A stretch of DNA of 63,601 bases, the filler included, from Choristocarpus tenellus KU-1152 (lineage: Eukaryota > Protista > Phaeophyceae), in assembly GCA_964200185.2 (NCBI GenBank). It is 11 parts of 11 records of this genome, joined end to end, with 100 filler letters (N's around TTAATTAATTAA, not from the genome) between each part and the next. Parts side by side here need not be neighbours in the genome. Positions count along the whole stretch, not along the records: positions 3,155 to 10,505 come from CAXNAD020006290.1; 10 more parts are not named here. The stretch is one strand, 5' to 3'. Below are positions 3,155 through 11,899 of the stretch, in pieces. The translations under genes and the position numbers were made by a program. Positions within the stretch are counted from its first letter, which is position 1; every line of letters starts with the position of its first letter. The notes below the pieces were generated by a model. That model did no database searches and was not told the origin of the DNA. It saw nothing but the letters and a program-made list of their open reading frames with translations.

Positions 3155-3548
3155 AATGGACAGCCGCCACCCCCTCCCAGATACTTTGAGCCAGAATAAC
3201 TCCAGAACACTGAAGAGACTCATGGCTTACTCTCTCGAGTTCACTCTGCTTTTTCGTGTACAACTTTAACACTTTGGGAAGACATATTCAGAGTGTTTAT
3301 ACATCCTCAACCTTTCTTCTCACAGTACAACAATCCTCTTCTCAAACACCATGTTTGACTCACCACAGTAGCAGTGATTCATGCTTCATTGCATTCAATC
3401 ATCCAACCCTCTCCTCAGAGCACGACATCTGATCTGTCACACTGGAATAAACTAGCTCTTCATTGCACTAGATCAACTATTCGAATAACAAGACAACAAG
3501 CCTCTTGTAGAACATTCACTTTGACCTACCGCATCGTCACCGACCCAT

Positions 3549-3723
3549 GGCTCAAAATGTCTGGGGGGGGGGGTTACACCAGGGTGTCTATTCGGGACAG
3601 TCCAGGAGAAGTGCACTTACATTATACATCCAATGCATGCAACCAAGTCACCCCAAAATATCGCAACATGGAAAAATGGGCCTCGAATGGACAGCCACCA
3701 CCGCCCCCCTGATACTCTGAGTC
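3549..3723 (+). mobile_element. MITE family B, 175 bp, with G/C-run subterminals
   Basis: TIR GGCTCAAAATGTCTG(n)...C(n)TGATACTCTGAGTC; TSD CAT at 3546-3548 and 3724-3726. Confidence 0.92.
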
Positions 3724-4173
3724 CATACTTCACCAGTGCACTAAATTTTTCAGTCAAAGGAAACAGCAAACATTATACCTAACGTAGGTGATCTTTCTTG
3801 ATTCAAACTGCAAATTTAACTGTTTGGGGATAATACCTGCGGCTTGGAGGGTGAGTAACACTCTCTCGATTCGGTTAATATCCTCTTCCCACATGGGAGA
3901 TGGCAACACCGTATCATCTAAATGTACAAGGAGGCCCAACAAGGAACCAGAACATAAAAACGTTGTTGACATGAACCTCTAGAACAACTAAATAGCATAA
4001 AAAGTAATTGAAGGGGTTTTCAAGTACCATCAAGGGTAACCAACACGGTTTGTCTACATTCTTCATCATCCCTCAAAAAAAATTGCAAATAAATTGATTG
4101 AATGTCCATACAACTCAATTATTTTGCACCCCCTAAATTATCGAGCCAATCGTCCATAGACGGCAAGAGTCAA

Positions 4174-4388
4174 GACTCAAAGTATCTGGGGGGGNNNNNN
4201 NNNNAGAGTGACGGCACAAACATTATAGGGGGGGGGGGGTCTACGCCAGGGTGTCCATTTGGCCCATTCCAGGAGAATTACACTTATATTATCCGTCCGA
4301 TACATGCAACCAAACCACCCAAAAATCACGACATGGAAAAATGGGCCCCGAATGGACAGCCACCACCCCCCCTAGATACTTTGAAATC
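4174..4388 (+). mobile_element. MITE family B spanning a 10-N gap, possibly the ends of two separate copies
   Basis: GACTCAAAGTATCTG7...CCCCCCTAGATACTTTGAAATC. The flanks CAA and GAG do not match, and part of the Gypsy RT expected between them is missing. Confidence 0.85.
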
Positions 4389-4518
4389 GAGATCCGCTTT
4401 GACTAAGAGCGTGACAGGTGGCAACCAGGGACTGGTGGACGGATGAACAATTCCTCGTTTTTCCATGTCTCCAACGCACTTGGAAATTGTATCTCAAAGT
4501 GGGCGGTTACTCTATATG

Positions 4519-4828
4519 CTTCCAAACGCTTTATACCATTTTTTTTGTCCAGTTTCTTCACAATACCCATATATATTCACCTTTGTTAATTCTATTGATC
4601 GCCATTTCAATTTTATCAATTAATTTACGGTAACGATTTCTAGTTCTAAGTTCAATTTTTGTTTCTCTTTCAATGCTAGCTAGCTCTGTCATTTATATCT
4701 GGTTAATTCCAGTTTTCTTCCTGTAAGTGATTCAAAGTTTCACGTGACTCTTCTAACAATTTTTTACGCCAGCTGTATATTTTTTGTTTAAATTATTCAA
4801 TTTGCATTGGGTTCATATAAATTTCAGT
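4519..4828 (-). pseudogene. dksA: Decayed fragment of bacterial RNA polymerase-binding factor DksA (alphaproteobacterial, Rickettsiales-like)
   Basis: Reconstructed TEIYMNPMQIE*FKQKIYSWRKKLLEESRETLNHLQEENWN*PDINDRAS/IERETKIELRTRNRYRKLIDKIEMAINRINKGEY/GYCEETGQK/GIKRLEA. It has the DxxDxA coiled-coil tip and the alpha-type GYCEETG..IG.KRLEA segment, with 2 stops and 3 frameshifts, and is AT-rich relative to its flanks. Confidence 0.9.
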
Positions 4829-7800
4829 TATGGAGTACGACTCGTTTTATGTACATCAGGTTCAAGTGGAAATTCAACAGTAGCTGAGGTAAATCCGCCT
4901 AACCCCTGCTCTAAAAGGGCGAACGTTTGCCTATGTTTGACGCAAACATTCAGTGATTTATTTATCTGTTTCATCTACAGTAACCAGATTATTTGACAAT
5001 GTGTGTACAAATTCCCTCATTAAGTTCTTCAAGTATATGGTATTCAAAGATCGGACGCACTTGTAGGTGTAGCTGCAATGACACTGACAAGCACATCCTC
5101 CTTGAACTCATCTATAGTGACTGGAGCAATAGTTACAATTTTGAACCTTGGAGGTATCTTAATTCCTTACTCGGTGGATTGGTAATCTGCACAACACAAG
5201 AACCATCACCTTGCCACACTGAGAGGATACGACCCATCATTAGGCAGAATCGAACACTTTGACGACCCAAGGTTTCCAGCGAGTAGTCAGACTTGACGTG
5301 AGTTTTGATAACAGCCTCCACTACTGAATCGTGAAGTGCTTTGGACTTAGCGACAACAACAGTGTCTAAGTGGGGAGGAACATATGACAATGAACAGTTG
5401 AGCCTGGGACTGGCGTGGTGGCATGGACCAATGCAACAGTGCGATATGGTGGGACAACAGAGTTTTATGGATAAACATGAAGTTGGGGCAGTTAGTTCAA
5501 CACACAATTGCAAAAAAAAACTCTCCTAACACTATAAAATAACACTCGCAGAAAATACCTCTGTCAAAGCAACTGCATGGACTTGGCCAACCTGCCGTTC
5601 TGGGATCTGAACTACACCATCTCCAACAAAGACTCCCCCACTTTTGAACATTTGGATGGTAGGGATTTTGCACAAGGGTCAGGAGCTTAGACCAACCCAA
5701 CAACAACTACGATGGCACTGCACAACTATAACAATAACAGAAGACGTGAAGGAATAGGATACGGAGTATCATTCTTTCGTTGATCTCTTACGGAGGTTTC
5801 ATTATTTTTTGTTGTAGTTTATTTGTTACAGCTATCATCATATATTATGGTACTATAATTACTGCTTAATGTCTGTACTTTTCTAGTCGCAAAGATGGTG
5901 TACTACATTAAGAGGAAACATTGAGATACAATCGGAACCTAATGGCTGCATCATGATTGATAGAAAATGGTGAAAAGTAGGGTGAACGAGAATCAAGATG
6001 TACTCTGTGTGCGCTAAAGATTGTTGTTGGATGATATTTTTGTCATAGAAGGGACAGTGGATGTAGGATTAGCATAGAGAGAATCACTGTATAAAATGAG
6101 GGTGACAACAGTGACGACTTGAGCGATCCTGGGTGAAACTAAAAATTGTTGTGCCAAACAAATTGGAGCGCTTCTTTGGAGCAAGAGCTACCAGAGTGAG
6201 CAAGAAAAGTTGGTGCATGTCAAGGATAGGAATAATCTCTTACCCACGATGCATGGGGGTAAGGCAGAGCAAAGGTGGTTCTTGGAGCAGCATTTGCAGA
6301 CTATAAAATAGTTATTGGGATAATTATGATATTAGGTGCGTGTTTGAGGATAAGAACTACTGCAAACCAAGACTGGCATGGAGCGATGTCGGCGAAGTAG
6401 GAAATTGTGAAAGGTTGGCTATTGCACAAATGGGTAGATGCAGTGCCAGTGGGTTAATGAGTTAGTTGTATGGACTTGGAGGAGGGAGAGGTAAGGTGGG
6501 AGACGAACCCGTGCCATGTGCATTGATGTTTATATCCTTCTTTGTAATGGAGCTGTCAACTTATCCAAGTCAGATTTGAGGAGGGAGAAGAGGAAGTAAG
6601 ACATGAAAGAAGATAAATTATAGTCCTGGCAATAATCTTGGAGATGGTGACTTGCACCATAAATTGAACAAGTGTCAACAAACACCAGTGATTTCCCTGG
6701 GACAGGAACTCAGATGTAAGAGCGAGAAAGGGTGGGAGGAGGGAAAGAAGACTGCTCTTCGATCAGGAAGCAAATTGAGTGGGAACGGGGTGATACATGC
6801 ACTCCATATTGTAAAACTAAGTTCTAAAACAACAGTATAGTCACCACTGTCTTTGTACAGAAACGAGTCACTAGCATCACGTGCTTGTGTAAAAACAACT
6901 TCACAAAAATCTACAGTGCCCAGACCAAGCCAAAGACTCGGTTTTCCGAACAGGCATATGCCCATGACATGCAGTGTCGCGTGTGGGGGACGTCAGAGAT
7001 TGCAACTTCTTTACATGAAATTAGAGTAGTAGTGAGCCAGGTTCTTGTTGCCTGAGCCTCTAGGAAAAGAACAATGCTCAGGTGTGGCATTCACTGTTAT
7101 AGAGGCGAAGCTATGTGTATGGATAGCAATAGCATCCATGAACTCCCTCGCTCAAACTCTTGTCGGGACCCACCTACCTGAAGTCCAAGCATGTTCTGGA
7201 TGCTAACCCATAGATACGTCTATTCTAACACCTAGTATTTACTCCAAGCATACACTAGAGTGCTTGGCACATATGTTGTGGCGGTTAGCATGACCTAACT
7301 GCTCTCCTAATAAGCTTAGAGGTGCATCCTCAGCATGCTATGAAACCTTTTAGGAAAGGAATTATGATGCTTCAAGGGTGTCAAAATTTATATGAATGAG
7401 GTGGACATCTCCCTCCATAGAATGAAAGAAAGGCACTGCAACAGTAGCTTCCTTTTTTGAAGCCCACAAATTTCTGTACTTAGTATTGCAAATGCTTGCC
7501 ACACATGTATAACCAGAGGCATCACATCCCCACAAAATATATATGCTCCCTATTATATAAATGGTTATCTTCAACGAGAAACTATTTTTTTTCTCTACAA
7601 TTGTTTCAAAGTAATTTTCTTGCACTCCAGACCTCCACAGGAAGGATATATGAATGTGTAATGTTGTAACATACTATGAAGCACCCTCTGCTTACAGATC
7701 CCCCTCCCTTCCTCTTACTTCATCAGTTCATTGCAATGTTAGTCTTGATTTGTCAATATTACCTTTTCTGCCCTGATTTAGCATTAGGTGGACCACCTGG

Positions 7801-8110
7801 AGTACGCTGACCAATTCATGGGTTAGCATTACCAGGACCAACTGAATCAACCTGACCCAGTTCACCTGGGTTAGTGTTGTCAGGTCCAAAAATAGGGGCT
7901 GTTGACCCTACATTATGGTTGGAGATAGTTTATTATGAAGCTAGTGATTAAGTTTGTATGGGGACCCAAGAATCCTAGGGTTGAAAATATAAAATTTAAT
8001 TTAAATTGTAAGAACATTCGAAGGGGTGACCCTCAATGCATCACAACATTTCAGACATCATGAAATAACTTAAGGTATACCCCTCAAAGCTTTGGACATT
8101 ACCTTAGACA

Positions 8111-9851
8111 CTATTTTCCCTCTTTTGTTCCTTCCCCAAGAGCGGGGTGAAGCTGTACGTCTTCCCATGCCTTCTCCATCACGGCAATTGTCACCTTCTG
8201 GATCCAAATGTCGAATTCGAATGCTAGCTCCAACACCCACTCCCTTAGCTGGTCGACAATGGGCAAAAAGTAGGCATCAGGGAGGAGACCTCGCACCAAC
8301 TGCTTGTCACTGATATGTTTGTACTTCTGCATGAGCTGAACTAGTGTCCTAGGCTTGGCCACTTTTGTTTGTGCTTTCCCTTGACTCTTCCCCTGCACCA
8401 AACCCGCTTTTTGTTTGGCCTTGCTCTGCCCATGCAATGTCACATCTTCTTTCTCCTCTCCCTGCCCATTCTGGACAGAGGTTTCGCTGTCGACCTTGTT
8501 TTGTGCAGAATCGCCTTGGTACTGATCCATTTTCCTCTCACTTTCTCCCTCCTCTTCTCCTACCACCCTATTACCTTCTTTTTCTTTCTGATCCTTGCCC
8601 TTGTCCTCCCCATCCACAGTGCTCTCTTCACCTCTCTCTATCTTCTCCTTGTCCATCCCACCTCCTTTGTCCTCTTCTTCAACTATCTCTCTTACAACAG
8701 CATCGATCCCCTCCTCTCCATCCTTGCCGTACTCTTCAGCTCTGTTATGGTTTCTGGGATCCCTGTCCTCATCCACGCCATTAACAGCCATCTGTCTGGC
8801 CTTGGCCAACTCGATTTCCTCCCTCACTGCATCAGAAATCGTTTCTTCATTTGGTGCAGTGAGTTCCGGCCGCAATATCCTAATGATGAGGTACACTAAC
8901 GTAGCAAGTACTTGACAATTGTGTGACATGATGGTCTGCTTAACCCCACGTGCAGATGAGAGCCCTGATTCCAAGGGATACAGCAAGACCCAAGGTATGA
9001 GCACCCTCACCATCAGATAATTAGTAAGCATCATCTCAACAAGAGATGTGTCATACCATTTACCACTCGCATCATGCCTGTATACAGACTGCAGCTTTCC
9101 AGGCAGTGTTGTCTTGCCCCACAGAATAATATCTCTGAGGCTCATGTCACCCACTGAATTGAGAGTGTGGGCAGGACTAGGACTGGTGCTCGTGGTCACA
9201 TCTTCAGCAACCCCTACTTTCTTGGTTTTGCTGTGTCCAATCCTCCCATGCAGCCAAGGAAGGAAGTGGTGCTCCAACCCACCATGGTGAGTGGGGGTAC
9301 AAAGTAACAATGCCTTTGCACCAGGTACCGTTGATTTATTGATCGCATAAAGTGTGGCATCCAATGACTCTGGTGGGTCTCTCTCAGGAGAGAGACAGCG
9401 TAGGCCACCAAGGGGGTCAAAGGATAAGACTTTCTTTTCTTGTTCAAAGAAAAAGCCTTCTGGAAAGTAATTTCCGTCAGTGGTGAGGTAGCTGAGGAAT
9501 GTCATAATATCTGGTGCTGGCATATCTCGTGTAATACTTTGCATGACACCCTTTACATGAACCTTAACACATAATAGTGCAGCATCATCAGCCTTGCTGT
9601 GGTATTCTGATGCCCCCACTGCCTTCCACATAGATCCAACAAGGCCACCCGCTCTTGAGCCTCCAAGAGAAGCATACACATCTCGGGATGCCTTCTTTCC
9701 AACTACCTTGGCAAGACGGAGGTTGAGCTTAGAGCTCTTTAAAACTGAGTTGCTGATAGGGAAGCGGGCCATCTTAAGGAGCCAGTTTTGGCAACGAGTA
9801 AAGTAGATCGCCAAGGTTACACTCCAGTCCAGAGTATCTTGCTCTTTGGAC
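8111..9851 (-). CDS. Large terminal exon of an uncharacterised protein (~580 aa, with an acidic/Gly-rich linker)
   Basis: The 567-aa ORF extends to a pyrimidine tract plus CAG acceptor at 9852-9854; stop at 8111-8113. No family recognised. Confidence 0.8.
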
Positions 9852-11899
9852 CTGAGTGCACAAGCAAAGAGGGGACATTATCTCAAGCAATAAAGGATTT
9901 ATTCCAAAGTATGAGTATCAGAAAGGTATGTCCCAAATATTTAAAGGAGTGACTGGAAACCCCCCTGGCACTGACCTGGCTACCACTGCCGCCTCAGGCA
10001 CAATAGAGTCCATTCCAGTTATTGAAAGAAAGTGAACTTCCTCTGGTTCTACTCCTTGTACTACTTCAGAATTACAGCAGAATGAAAGACCTAACACGAC
10101 ACAAACCAAGGTTGAAAGCTCGATGAATTGGAGCATGAGATGTGATAGTATAAGTCATGGTGGTAATATTTGTACCACTGTCATCTTTGCATATACAATA
10201 AACAAAGATAAAAAGGTCCATCAGCACAGTCAAGGTGAAGAGCCCAATACTCACAAAATACATACGCAATGTCAGGGACATAAGAATGCAAAACAAGGAA
10301 ATATCATATTTCTTCACTCTTATCCTTCTTAAAATACCCGTTCCACAGATACTGCTGCCCCCTAGGTACATTAGAAAAGACCTGCGGGATTTCAGGGTTA
10401 ATGGTCAATCTAGGGTTAGGTTTGGGGTTAGGTTTATAGTCAGGATCGGGGATAGTTTTCCCTTCTCAAGTGTACATGGGTTTGGGCAAACGTATCTGGG
10501 GGGGGNNNNNNNNNNNNNNNNNNNNNNNNNNNNNNNNNNNNNNNNNNNNTTAATTAATTAANNNNNNNNNNNNNNNNNNNNNNNNNNNNNNNNNNNNNNN
10601 NNNNNCTTTCCGCGCACCATTTTCGGTCAAACCCATCCTCAATAGTATGCTCCATCCTCAATTTTGGTGATCGGCTGTTTAATCCCTGAAAGGAAATGAT
10701 CTTGCCGTTGTGTCTGAGCCGAATCTCCTAACTGGTAACATTGTTTTGGTCACGATCTCTTTTCTGCATTCTTGTGCAACTCCTTCCTGTGTTCTTGACG
10801 GTCAAGTGAAGTGAAGTATGGTGCGCTGGCTGAATAAAATAGTCCAGGTATATCGAAGGCATGCCCAACTGATGCCCCACTACTTACGTCTTGAAAAGTA
10901 ACTAATAAGAACAAATTTCACGTGAGTTTCCCCGACCCACCCACACACTATATCCTCCACCGCCCCCCTCTCCCGGTTTCTATCTACCTGTGGAGAATTA
11001 TGTAGTCACAAGTGCTGTCATAGTGTCAAAAGAAGTATTATGTAGCTGAAGTACTGCGTAGTAGTACTAAGAGTGAGTGCATTGCCCTGGTGCGTGGATC
11101 TTACTACTACCATGTTCATCACGGGTTATTCATTGTTCACTGTGACTTTAAATGAAATCAACCACAGAAGAATACATTTGTAATCATCTAGCATAGATAG
11201 TTACAAAATCAGTAATTTGTTTCCATGTCCCACTTAATTCCACTAGGAGGATTGAAACCATACACCTAACTCAACTACATCGTACACTTGCATAACCCAA
11301 ACTCAACAACCCCCTGCACACTCCACGCACATGACGCCCTTCAATCATGGTGGTCTACTTGCACAAACTGTGCACACCCCTCAACCACAAATTCAAACAC
11401 CCCACTACACTCCGACCCTAATTTTTTTTACTACTCATTCTTCTACTACACGTATTATGAGCAAAATCATAATTCGTGTACGCATGGCTGTTACGGTATA
11501 CCTGCATGGTAATATCCGGATTAAAAGAGATGTGGTGAGGTTAGGATAACGATATTACTGAAAAGAGGTTGACATATGGTATATATATATAAATACTTTG
11601 GCACCCTCCATGATAAGTTCATATTTCTCTTTATAGAGATGTTTGTGCCAACTGAGATTTTGTGTTAAGCTGTGTCAGGGAGGGAGAAGACAAAGACCAA
11701 CATAATTTATTAGAACTTCTGATACAACGATATTGTTATTGTCATAGTCGGGTCCAAGATACTTCCTTCTTTTAGAATCTGCACTAGCTAGTTTGAAGTA
11801 TACAACAATGCAATGTCCCCTATGTATGATATTACTCCCCACGAACCAGTGTCCTTCATCCGATCCTCTTCAGCATCTTCTCCACAGCAGTGTTAAGTG

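Follow-up and report, generated by a model that had tools for sequence, protein, structure and literature searches.

A decayed Rickettsiaceae-type dksA fragment inside a retroelement of the brown alga Choristocarpus tenellus

Bacteria of the Megaira group are obligately intracellular Rickettsiaceae found with many algae and ciliates. DksA is a bacterial RNA polymerase secondary-channel factor, and organelle DNA of the NUMT and NUPT type (nuclear insertions of mitochondrial and plastid DNA) inserts at double-strand breaks by end joining. Here we describe a fossil dksA fragment of Rickettsiaceae type that sits within a retroelement in the genome assembly of Choristocarpus tenellus KU-1152 (GCA_964200185.2). 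The window analysed is a stretch of 63,601 nucleotides (nt) joined from 11 parts of 11 records, and the fragment lies in the part that spans positions 3,155 to 10,505 (CAXNAD020006290.1, here contig C6290). Two further fossils of the same gene lie on contigs C2395 and C8266.

The transfer of Megaira-type DNA to an algal nucleus has a precedent in Volvox carteri strain EVE, whose nuclear genome holds ~9 kb of rickettsial (Megaira-related) DNA (Kawafune et al. 2015, PMC4324946). As appears to be the case in Choristocarpus, DNA of a Rickettsiaceae endosymbiont has been fixed there in an algal nucleus; the Volvox strain is free of the bacterium, and its insert was read as the trace of a past association (PMC4324946). 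In Volvox, a green alga, the insert forms a single block of 9 kb that contains four gene-like sequences (PMC4324946), unlike the three short single-gene pieces, one of them inside a retrotransposon, of the brown alga. Wolbachia nuclear insertions ('nuwts') in arthropods and nematodes (reviewed in PMC5541319) are likewise neutrally decaying nuclear fossils of intracellular Rickettsiales, most of them non-functional, but they come from another bacterial family, sit in another host kingdom and are often large or numerous with many genes, whereas only dksA was found here. That Megaira-group bacteria are present-day associates of brown algae is shown by MegNdeciBESST (1.27 Mb, one scaffold), a Megaira-related genome obtained when the brown alga Nemacystus decipiens was sequenced (Davison et al. 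2023, PMC10132079), but it is a living genome in the reads and not host-integrated. This is the only other link between the Megaira group and a brown alga that we found, and the literature searched on these topics does not describe Rickettsiaceae DNA from the nuclear genome of any brown alga, which is not proof of absence.

A truncated dksA pseudogene fragment

Contig C6290 belongs to a 164-Mb assembly of 27,310 contigs, and its first base is window position 3155. The GC content is 0.31 in 200-nt windows across 4555–4854, against ~0.43–0.50 in most of the contig, including the adjacent 4155–4554. None of the open reading frames (ORFs) listed for the window covers this AT-rich segment, as the initial annotation had remarked. 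On the minus strand the segment reads, in three frames, EIYMNPMQIE*FKQKIYSWRKKLLEESRETLNHLQEENWN*PDINDRAS / IERETKIELRTRNRYRKLIDKIEMAINRINKGEY / GYCEETGQK / GIKRLEA (asterisk, stop), which reproduces exactly the DksA text given in that annotation. Lesions were called from a DNA alignment of the insert to Rickettsiaceae (Megaira) dksA, and the features of the fragment are as follows.

4517–4830, minus strand: dksA pseudogene fragment, 314 nt (Pfam and NCBIfam matches; DNA alignments to Megaira G373 and to G274)
4793–4795, minus strand: nonsense codon TAA, TAT (Tyr) in relatives (translation and alignment)
4703–4705, minus strand: nonsense codon TAA, GAA (Glu) in relatives (translation and alignment)
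4682–4699, minus strand: DxxDxA coiled-coil tip motif, legible as D-I-N-D-R-A (translation; aligns with DLNDRA of Rickettsiaceae DksA)
4675–4684, minus strand: +4 frameshift by tandem duplication of TAGC, GCTAGCTAGC (alignment gaps)
4569–4575, minus strand: +4 frameshift by (AT)n expansion between GEY and GYC (alignment)
4539–4546, minus strand: +1 frameshift in an A8 run, where the C8266 fossil retains the in-frame CAAAAAATAGG (alignment)

The Megaira alignment thus displays both of the nonsense codons and all three of the slippage-type frameshifts (TAGC, AT and A8) that had been proposed. As the three frameshifts sum to +9, the first and last pieces of the insert share a frame. The insert corresponds to ~nt 45–345 of the 432-nt Rickettsiaceae dksA (codons ~15–115) and is truncated at both ends; position 4517 is also the common stop of its DNA matches to both other host fossils.

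We examined membership of the DksA family with the NCBIfam model TIGR02420 and the Pfam models PF21157 (DksA_N) and PF01258 (zf-dskA_traR), searching separately the two uninterrupted pieces of 44 amino acids (aa; 4558–4692) and 29 aa (4706–4792). The 44-aa piece matches PF21157 at profile positions 38–71 (E 4e-10) and TIGR02420 (E 4.4e-11), and the 29-aa piece matches PF21157 at positions 5–33 (E 4e-6). Since both pieces are co-linear with the PF21157 profile, a resemblance by chance is ruled out. A BLASTN match to a Rickettsiaceae genome runs across 303 of the 314 nt (E 1.7e-42). The reading of the segment as a dksA fossil is thereby borne out.

The two PF21157 pieces represent the N-terminal coiled-coil domain of DksA. 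The C-terminal globular, zinc-finger-type region is incomplete: only GYCEETGQK-GIKRLEA remains, in which the GYCEETG motif is readable, and the insert stops at 4517, ahead of the ARPxATLCI part still visible in the C2395 and C8266 fossils. DksA of the donor family carries CEET and CIEA, that is, two Cys and not four. The best six-frame TIGR02420 scores, 41 bits for the insert and 62.8 for the C2395 fossil, fall below the cut-off of 115.5, and neither frame is intact. The insert is a pseudogene fragment of dksA and not a gene; it lies out of frame with the surrounding pol sequence, has no present function and is decaying neutrally.

Insertion site and host linkage

The sequence on either side of the insert derives from a retroelement, whose remains in C6290 are listed here from upstream to downstream in the orientation of the element (RT, reverse transcriptase), together with a repeat resembling a short interspersed nuclear element (SINE).

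4831–5462, minus strand: upstream flank, decayed retroelement gag-pol remains, ending ..EFPLEPDVHKTSRTP (pre-RT motif) (tblastx, co-linear with C276 160–1008; DNA matches to C276, C8658 and C2911)
4392–4516, minus strand: downstream flank YRV..DTISKCVGDMEKRGIVHPSTSPWLPPVTLLVKAD, N-terminal edge of RT (co-linear with C276 1021–1133 and C2911 1557–1631)
4228–4384, strand unassigned: SINE-like interspersed repeat of ~150 nt, inserted in RT (repeat families D1–D3; absent from C276)
3781–4178, minus strand: remainder of the decayed RT, interrupted by a 10-N scaffold gap (co-linear with C276 1194–1601)

A tblastx comparison with two diverged paralogues from the same genome, on C276 (L009) and C2911 (L012), shows the flanks to be fully co-linear and both paralogous sites to be empty. 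In C276, position 1008 is the homologue of window 4830 and position 1021 that of window 4504, so that the flanks are contiguous and hold no insert. In C2911 the homologues of window 4940 and 4466 lie 160 nt apart, as opposed to 474 nt in the window, a difference of exactly 314 nt. A composite of 4900–4831 joined to 4516–4440 aligns with C276 gap-free at the joint (..CGTACTCCA followed directly by TATAGAGTA.. in the composite, ..CGTGCTCCATATCAAGTG.. in C276). The exact spacing and the gap-free joint define the insert as 4517–4830, which trims slightly the nearly correct placement at 4515–4832 in the initial annotation. Target sequence was neither lost nor duplicated, and the borders are ambiguous only by a 2-nt CA, which occurs at each junction. 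Oriented like pol, the insert separates the Pro codon from the Tyr codon of the pre-RT motif. The empty sites are paralogous, not orthologous.

For the first 34 residues of the downstream flank (4392–4493) the genome offers at least 1463 candidate places. This 34-aa motif lies 0.7–0.8 kb upstream of RT_RNaseH_2 (PF17919), on the same strand, in at least 25 contigs, for example in C3492 (motif 4125–4226, PF17919 3099–3398, 767-aa frame) and C20132 (motif 1769–1870, PF17919 2561–2860, 447-aa frame). RT followed by RT_RNaseH_2 in one pol frame is a feature of the paralogues only, and judged by that order in the paralogues only the flanks are clearly Ty3/Gypsy-like pol. The flanks had been called Gypsy pol at the outset; retroelement pol is upheld by the empty paralogues and the at least 25 motif copies, and 'Gypsy' stands only in the sense of this Ty3/Gypsy-like RT–RNase H order. 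A repeat comparison within the 7.3-kb contig C6290 revealed no pair of long terminal repeats, and a sequence search of the PDB with the two best flank pieces gave chance hits only.

The SINE-like repeat at 4228–4384 is a second, later insertion into the same copy of the element. The repeat recurs at 3563–3707 and partially at 3155–3214 of the window, and also in C8266 (L149, 4471–4607 and 63–153). Its summed contig depth is ~1e5, compared with 21 for unique sequence, and judging by this depth it is present in thousands of copies. It starts with a G run and is also present in another organism of the same study.

For evidence independent of the assembly, Logan contigs assembled independently from public runs were aligned to window 4206–7200. 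In run X1, a 6167-nt contig covers 4355–7200 with 0 differences at a depth of 20.9 and spans both junctions; neighbouring X1 contigs, from unique to repeat sequence, have depths of 11–24. Run X2 comes from another sample of this organism; there, a contig of 619 nt matches 4513–5122 with 0 differences at a depth of 6.7 (neighbours 7.9). It bridges 4830/4831 and starts only 4 nt past the other junction. As both lines of evidence are contigs, these depths are coarse. The X1 contig begins at 4355, so the scaffold gap at 4195–4204 falls outside its span. Two 151-nt contigs of run X3, from a different organism of the same study, are identical to window 5678–5828 and 5861–6011 at a depth of 3, and X3 holds none other of the unique part of the window; they may represent a close relative, a conserved element or library carry-over.

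The host is a brown alga. The genome contains at least 63 matches to the chlorophyll-binding family PF00504, and the one complete PF00504 ORF that was compared is of the fucoxanthin chlorophyll a/c type, with best named hits in Discosporangium mesarthrocarpum (96%), Saccharina (91%), Ectocarpus (90%) and Sphacelaria (89%); we assign the host from this closeness of a fucoxanthin-type light-harvesting protein to those of brown algae. On the same contig as the insert, 3.3 kb away, lies one long frame.

8111–9814, minus strand: 567-aa ORF of a brown-alga-specific family (24 homologues, E 5e-120 to 6.5e-62)

All named homologues of this ORF belong to Ectocarpus spp., Scytosiphon and Hapterophycus, and by this distribution it identifies the contig as part of the host nuclear genome. 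C6290 thus combines a multi-copy retroelement family, the SINE-like repeat and a brown-alga-specific ORF. The ORF has a long Glu/Lys/Gly-rich stretch and is 40–51% identical to the Ectocarpus, Scytosiphon and Hapterophycus proteins. No convincing Pfam domain was found in it or its homologues, and a protein-atlas feature search gave a weak RasGAP-like lead only, on which we do not rely.

No bacterial genome is hidden in the assembly, as judged from three markers: a six-frame TIGR02420 search found no intact dksA, a search for DnaA (PF00308) found no intact gene and two partial matches only, and VirB4 (PF03135) was not found. That decay and eukaryotic flanks argue against contamination, as had been reasoned from the sequence at first, is strengthened by the presence of the insert at host depth in contigs of two samples and by the brown-alga-specific gene on its contig. 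The proposed check for junction-spanning reads was made through these raw-run contigs, which cover both junctions in X1 and one (4830/4831) in X2.

Donor affinity

When 1.84 billion representative proteins were queried exhaustively by phmmer with the 44-aa piece, one protein (P0001), at 72% identity, stood well above the rest, which are mostly at 50–60% and reach 65% at most. When an alignment of the phmmer hits was used to scan one genome per GTDB species, 80 named loci were obtained, topped by that of a Rickettsia endosymbiont; the remainder are mostly of Rhizobiales and other Alphaproteobacteria. Sampling of the GTDB order of that Rickettsia genome found dksA in 147 of 161 genomes. At the DNA level the insert matches 193 of 401 genomes, and identity to the best Rickettsiaceae is 72–75%, the best matches being to G343 (73% over 303 nt, E 1.7e-42), G274 (72%) and G373 (75% over 214 nt).

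Protein identity was computed on the insert read through with an X at each break, which leaves 97 alignable residues. The insert is identical to the DksA of G133 and G373 at 75 of these (77%) and to that of G274, G343 and G242 at 74%, as against 65% for the best of 77 non-Rickettsiales loci (top hits of the GTDB-wide scan). The DksA of G133 is identical, residue for residue, to the UniRef entry of 'Candidatus Megaera polyxenophila' (WP_282486736.1, BBB57097.1), also written 'Candidatus Megaira polyxenophila', which is thus the closest named relative and belongs to the 'Ca. Megaira' offered as an example in the initial annotation. This DksA of 144 aa shares with the fossil the wording YMNPMQ, RETLNHL, EE.WNEPD.NDRAS, RYRKLIDKIE and GYCEETG..IGIKRLEA; compared with it, the fossil lacks codons 1 to ~14 and ~116–144 and has 2 stops and 3 frameshifts.

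A careful maximum-likelihood tree (64 rows, LG+C20) pairs the window fossil with the C8266 fossil (93/89), and the pair adjoins G274 (87/72). The group of Megaira and fossils lies inside a clade of all 46 Rickettsiales rows (98/99*) and outside the clade (100/99*) that holds G001, the sole named Rickettsia genome. The GTDB family of G133 counts 130 species and includes G001 (the Rickettsia endosymbiont), G224 ('Candidatus Tisiphia'), G274 and G343, from which we identify it as Rickettsiaceae. Within the GTDB genus of G133 (8 species), identities on the 44-aa piece are 79% for G407, 76% for G406 and 69% for G133. The best scores on this piece across the family belong to G448, G407, G447 and G406, four genomes left out of the careful tree, whereas rows grouping with G001 are at ~54%. 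The top-scoring Rickettsiaceae DksA for the piece is at G448:C1:723404-723526.

The fossil therefore groups with a specific intracellular bacterial lineage, by identity (77% against at most 65%) and by the 98/99* clade, and the comparisons support a bacterium of the 'Candidatus Megaira' group (Rickettsiaceae) as the putative donor. A Rickettsiaceae-type source had been proposed from wording alone, with a DksA phylogeny proposed as the check; both the identities and the tree agree with it.

Origin of the three fossils

The two further fossils were found by the six-frame TIGR02420 search and a DNA search of the assembly.

C2395 2604–2903: dksA fossil covering ~nt 81–436 and reaching the 3' end of the gene (copy on extracted locus L004 1495–1860, C2395 ~2598–2963)
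C8266 3764–3862: dksA fossil covering ~nt 302–409, the C-terminal third only (copy on extracted locus L007 1520–1630, C8266 ~3783–3893)

The C2395 fossil keeps a single frame over ~100 codons, with 2 stops and no frameshift, and has lost both conserved Cys. The three fossils are ~100–360 nt long, have differing borders and hold no flanks in common except the SINE-like repeat. Bases absent from all aligned relatives make up 17/288 (6%) of the window copy and 17% of the C2395 copy, which shows that the copies have decayed to different degrees; all three fossils are old.

Several observations point to a common source. The fossils agree with each other against every aligned bacterium at, for example, IEMAI.RI, RTRN and ETGQKIGIK. 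The window and C2395 copies share 8 columns in which both carry a base that all 9 aligned bacterial dksA genes lack (e.g., behind IEMAI), where 3.0 are expected (P 0.003), and the base is identical in 5 of the 8. A quick tree places the three fossils in one group (SH-aLRT, the Shimodaira–Hasegawa-like approximate likelihood-ratio test, 76). Comparison of the 17-kb Megaira loci around dksA (G133 and G373) with the three host contigs, by tblastx and blastn, gave nothing beyond dksA, and across the whole 164-Mb genome the 17-kb locus matched nothing but dksA and, on contig C1, a conserved tRNA-Asn. The suggestion to scan for more Rickettsiales-like fragments was accordingly fruitful in part, with two more dksA fossils and nothing else from the Megaira locus or VirB4. 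Because the 17-kb locus yields dksA only, three independent random captures of a 0.43-kb gene from a genome of 1.3–2 Mb are implausible, and most likely one fragment was transferred, from a donor lineage outside the genes compared, and then copied within the nucleus. The initial annotation had proposed an old nuclear insertion from an intracellular symbiont; the nuclear fossil is confirmed, and direct capture at this site is uncertain, as the insert could derive by copying from a nuclear one that was there before.

Taken together, we consider it probable that the insert is a decaying piece of a Megaira-group dksA that was end-joined into a resident retrotransposon, following a single transfer and later nuclear copying. 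A Megaira-group dksA fragment would have entered the brown-alga nucleus, and pieces of it would later have been copied to new nuclear places, the one on C6290 perhaps among them. On C6290, a Ty3/Gypsy-like copy that was resident beforehand would have suffered a double-strand break at the Pro–Tyr border of its pre-RT motif, and the 314-nt piece would have been pasted in bluntly as 'filler' DNA. We infer the mechanism from the anatomy of the junctions only: a blunt insert with a possible microhomology of 2 nt, no target-site duplication and no target loss is most probably the product of end-joining repair of a double-strand break. NUMTs and NUPTs resemble it in just these respects (blunt, 0–2 nt of microhomology, no duplication or loss of target), but their source is an organelle genome and not a symbiont gene.

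A number of points weigh against this account. The statement that only dksA was transferred is limited to what was searched, namely the 17-kb locus, DnaA and VirB4, and not all Rickettsiaceae genes. A stretch of C3827 (3500–3736, plus strand) matches the Bac_DnaA profile PF00308 at positions 78–161 (E 2e-8) with 2 stops inside, and C3482 (7118–7267, minus strand) carries a second partial PF00308 match; the match on C3827 may represent another fossil of bacterial origin, or else exons of an AAA+ gene of the host, for instance ORC/CDC6. In the careful tree the three fossils do not form one clade, and C2395 is on a very long branch. The same tree groups the fossils and G274 with Megaira at 88/26 only, a weakness in keeping with the short DksA alignment (~100 aa), so that the assignment to the Megaira group does not extend to a particular genus. 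As for the site, eight translated pieces of the window flanks and two paralogue pieces matched no Pfam family at E up to 1, so that for the window the retroelement identity comes from the paralogues. X1 may be the assembly's own sample, in which case the 4517/4516 junction has a single source. The case that the host lineage itself once carried the symbiont is indirect.

Other histories are taken here in order of falling probability. The fossils may have been captured independently, in separate events over a lasting association with the symbiont, whose DNA would have been the direct source each time. The differing borders, the unshared flanks and the lack of monophyly in the careful tree would fit such captures, but at three random hits per 0.43-kb gene, a genome of 1.3–2 Mb should have left thousands of further fragments, whereas 17 kb around the Megaira dksA has no other match in 164 Mb and VirB4 has none, and the fossils share bases absent from all nine aligned bacterial genes. 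We regard this history as unlikely. No more probable, even when its two variants are counted together, is that a brown-alga ancestor took dksA from a Megaira-like endosymbiont, used it for a while, copied it and lost it, or that the RT of the retroelement copied a symbiont-derived transcript into pol.

Considered singly, the first variant would make the fossils relics of a once-functional nuclear dksA of Rickettsiaceae origin, possibly as a modulator of an organellar RNA polymerase of bacterial type, that multiplied and died. It would explain why dksA alone is seen, and three times, and why the C2395 copy runs in one frame to the 3' end of the gene with no frameshift. Yet the assembly holds no intact copy, and evidence of a promoter, an intron or a signal peptide was not found either. 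The window copy, cut short at either end, does not share the frame of the sequence around it, and the 57 hits among 1.84 billion proteins include no eukaryotic DksA family. These points make a functional past quite improbable. Distant long DksA-domain proteins were considered as eukaryotic candidates and rejected, the named ones being proteins of bacterial metagenome-assembled genomes.

The second variant, in which RT switched onto a co-packaged dksA RNA (e.g., the transcript of an earlier nuclear copy) and back again before integration, is in tune with an insert within pol and in pol orientation, with the CA dinucleotide at both junctions and with the several dksA-only copies. But with no element sequence lost or duplicated, the return switch would have had to fall on precisely the following nucleotide; the insert is missing from every other copy of the element family, and the other two fossils lack the sequence with which this element flanks the insert. 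Capture of this kind seems to us decidedly improbable.

A vector, such as a giant virus or phage with a Rickettsiaceae-like dksA, or a NUMT or NUPT, might have brought the gene in place of a resident symbiont. That mosaics of this sort occur is suggested by a metagenome contig (L145) that joins the end of plastid psbF to a Megaira-type dksA, but its dksA is 99% identical to that of living Megaira and hence no relative of the old fossils. Scanned with the DksA alignment, 2.9 million viral contigs yielded no relative, neither viral nor organellar sequence was observed beside any of the three fossils, and we know of no mitochondrial or plastid genome that encodes DksA, so a vector is highly improbable. 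The contig itself (ENA ERZ27292627, k141_348869; 866 nt, very AT-rich) has the 3' end of a plastid-type psbF overlapping the start of a 5'-truncated, otherwise intact dksA (99% to G133 and G373), with no psbE upstream, and is either a real mosaic or an assembly chimera.

Least probable of all, contamination or a chimera joining bacterial to host sequence is very unlikely: the assembly is fragmented and the scaffold gap lies 310 nt from the fossil, but the insert recurs with 0 differences and at flank depth in independent contigs of two samples, is decayed, unlike a live contaminant, and has an empty-site geometry exact to the nucleotide in an assembly where neither a bacterial dksA nor a dnaA is intact.

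Functionally the fragment is of no consequence to the alga, and the phenomenon is familiar from Volvox and from the hosts of Wolbachia. As an example of the entry of foreign DNA the locus is unusually clean, with nucleotide-exact borders, no target loss and paralogous empty sites, and the three dksA-only copies raise a small question of how such fragments spread within a genome. As the Megaira group is obligately intracellular, a fixed and decayed dksA gives molecular evidence that this lineage or an ancestor would have housed such a bacterium. The finding is thus a small but genuine footprint of DNA transfer from symbiont to host, and a historical marker of symbiosis.

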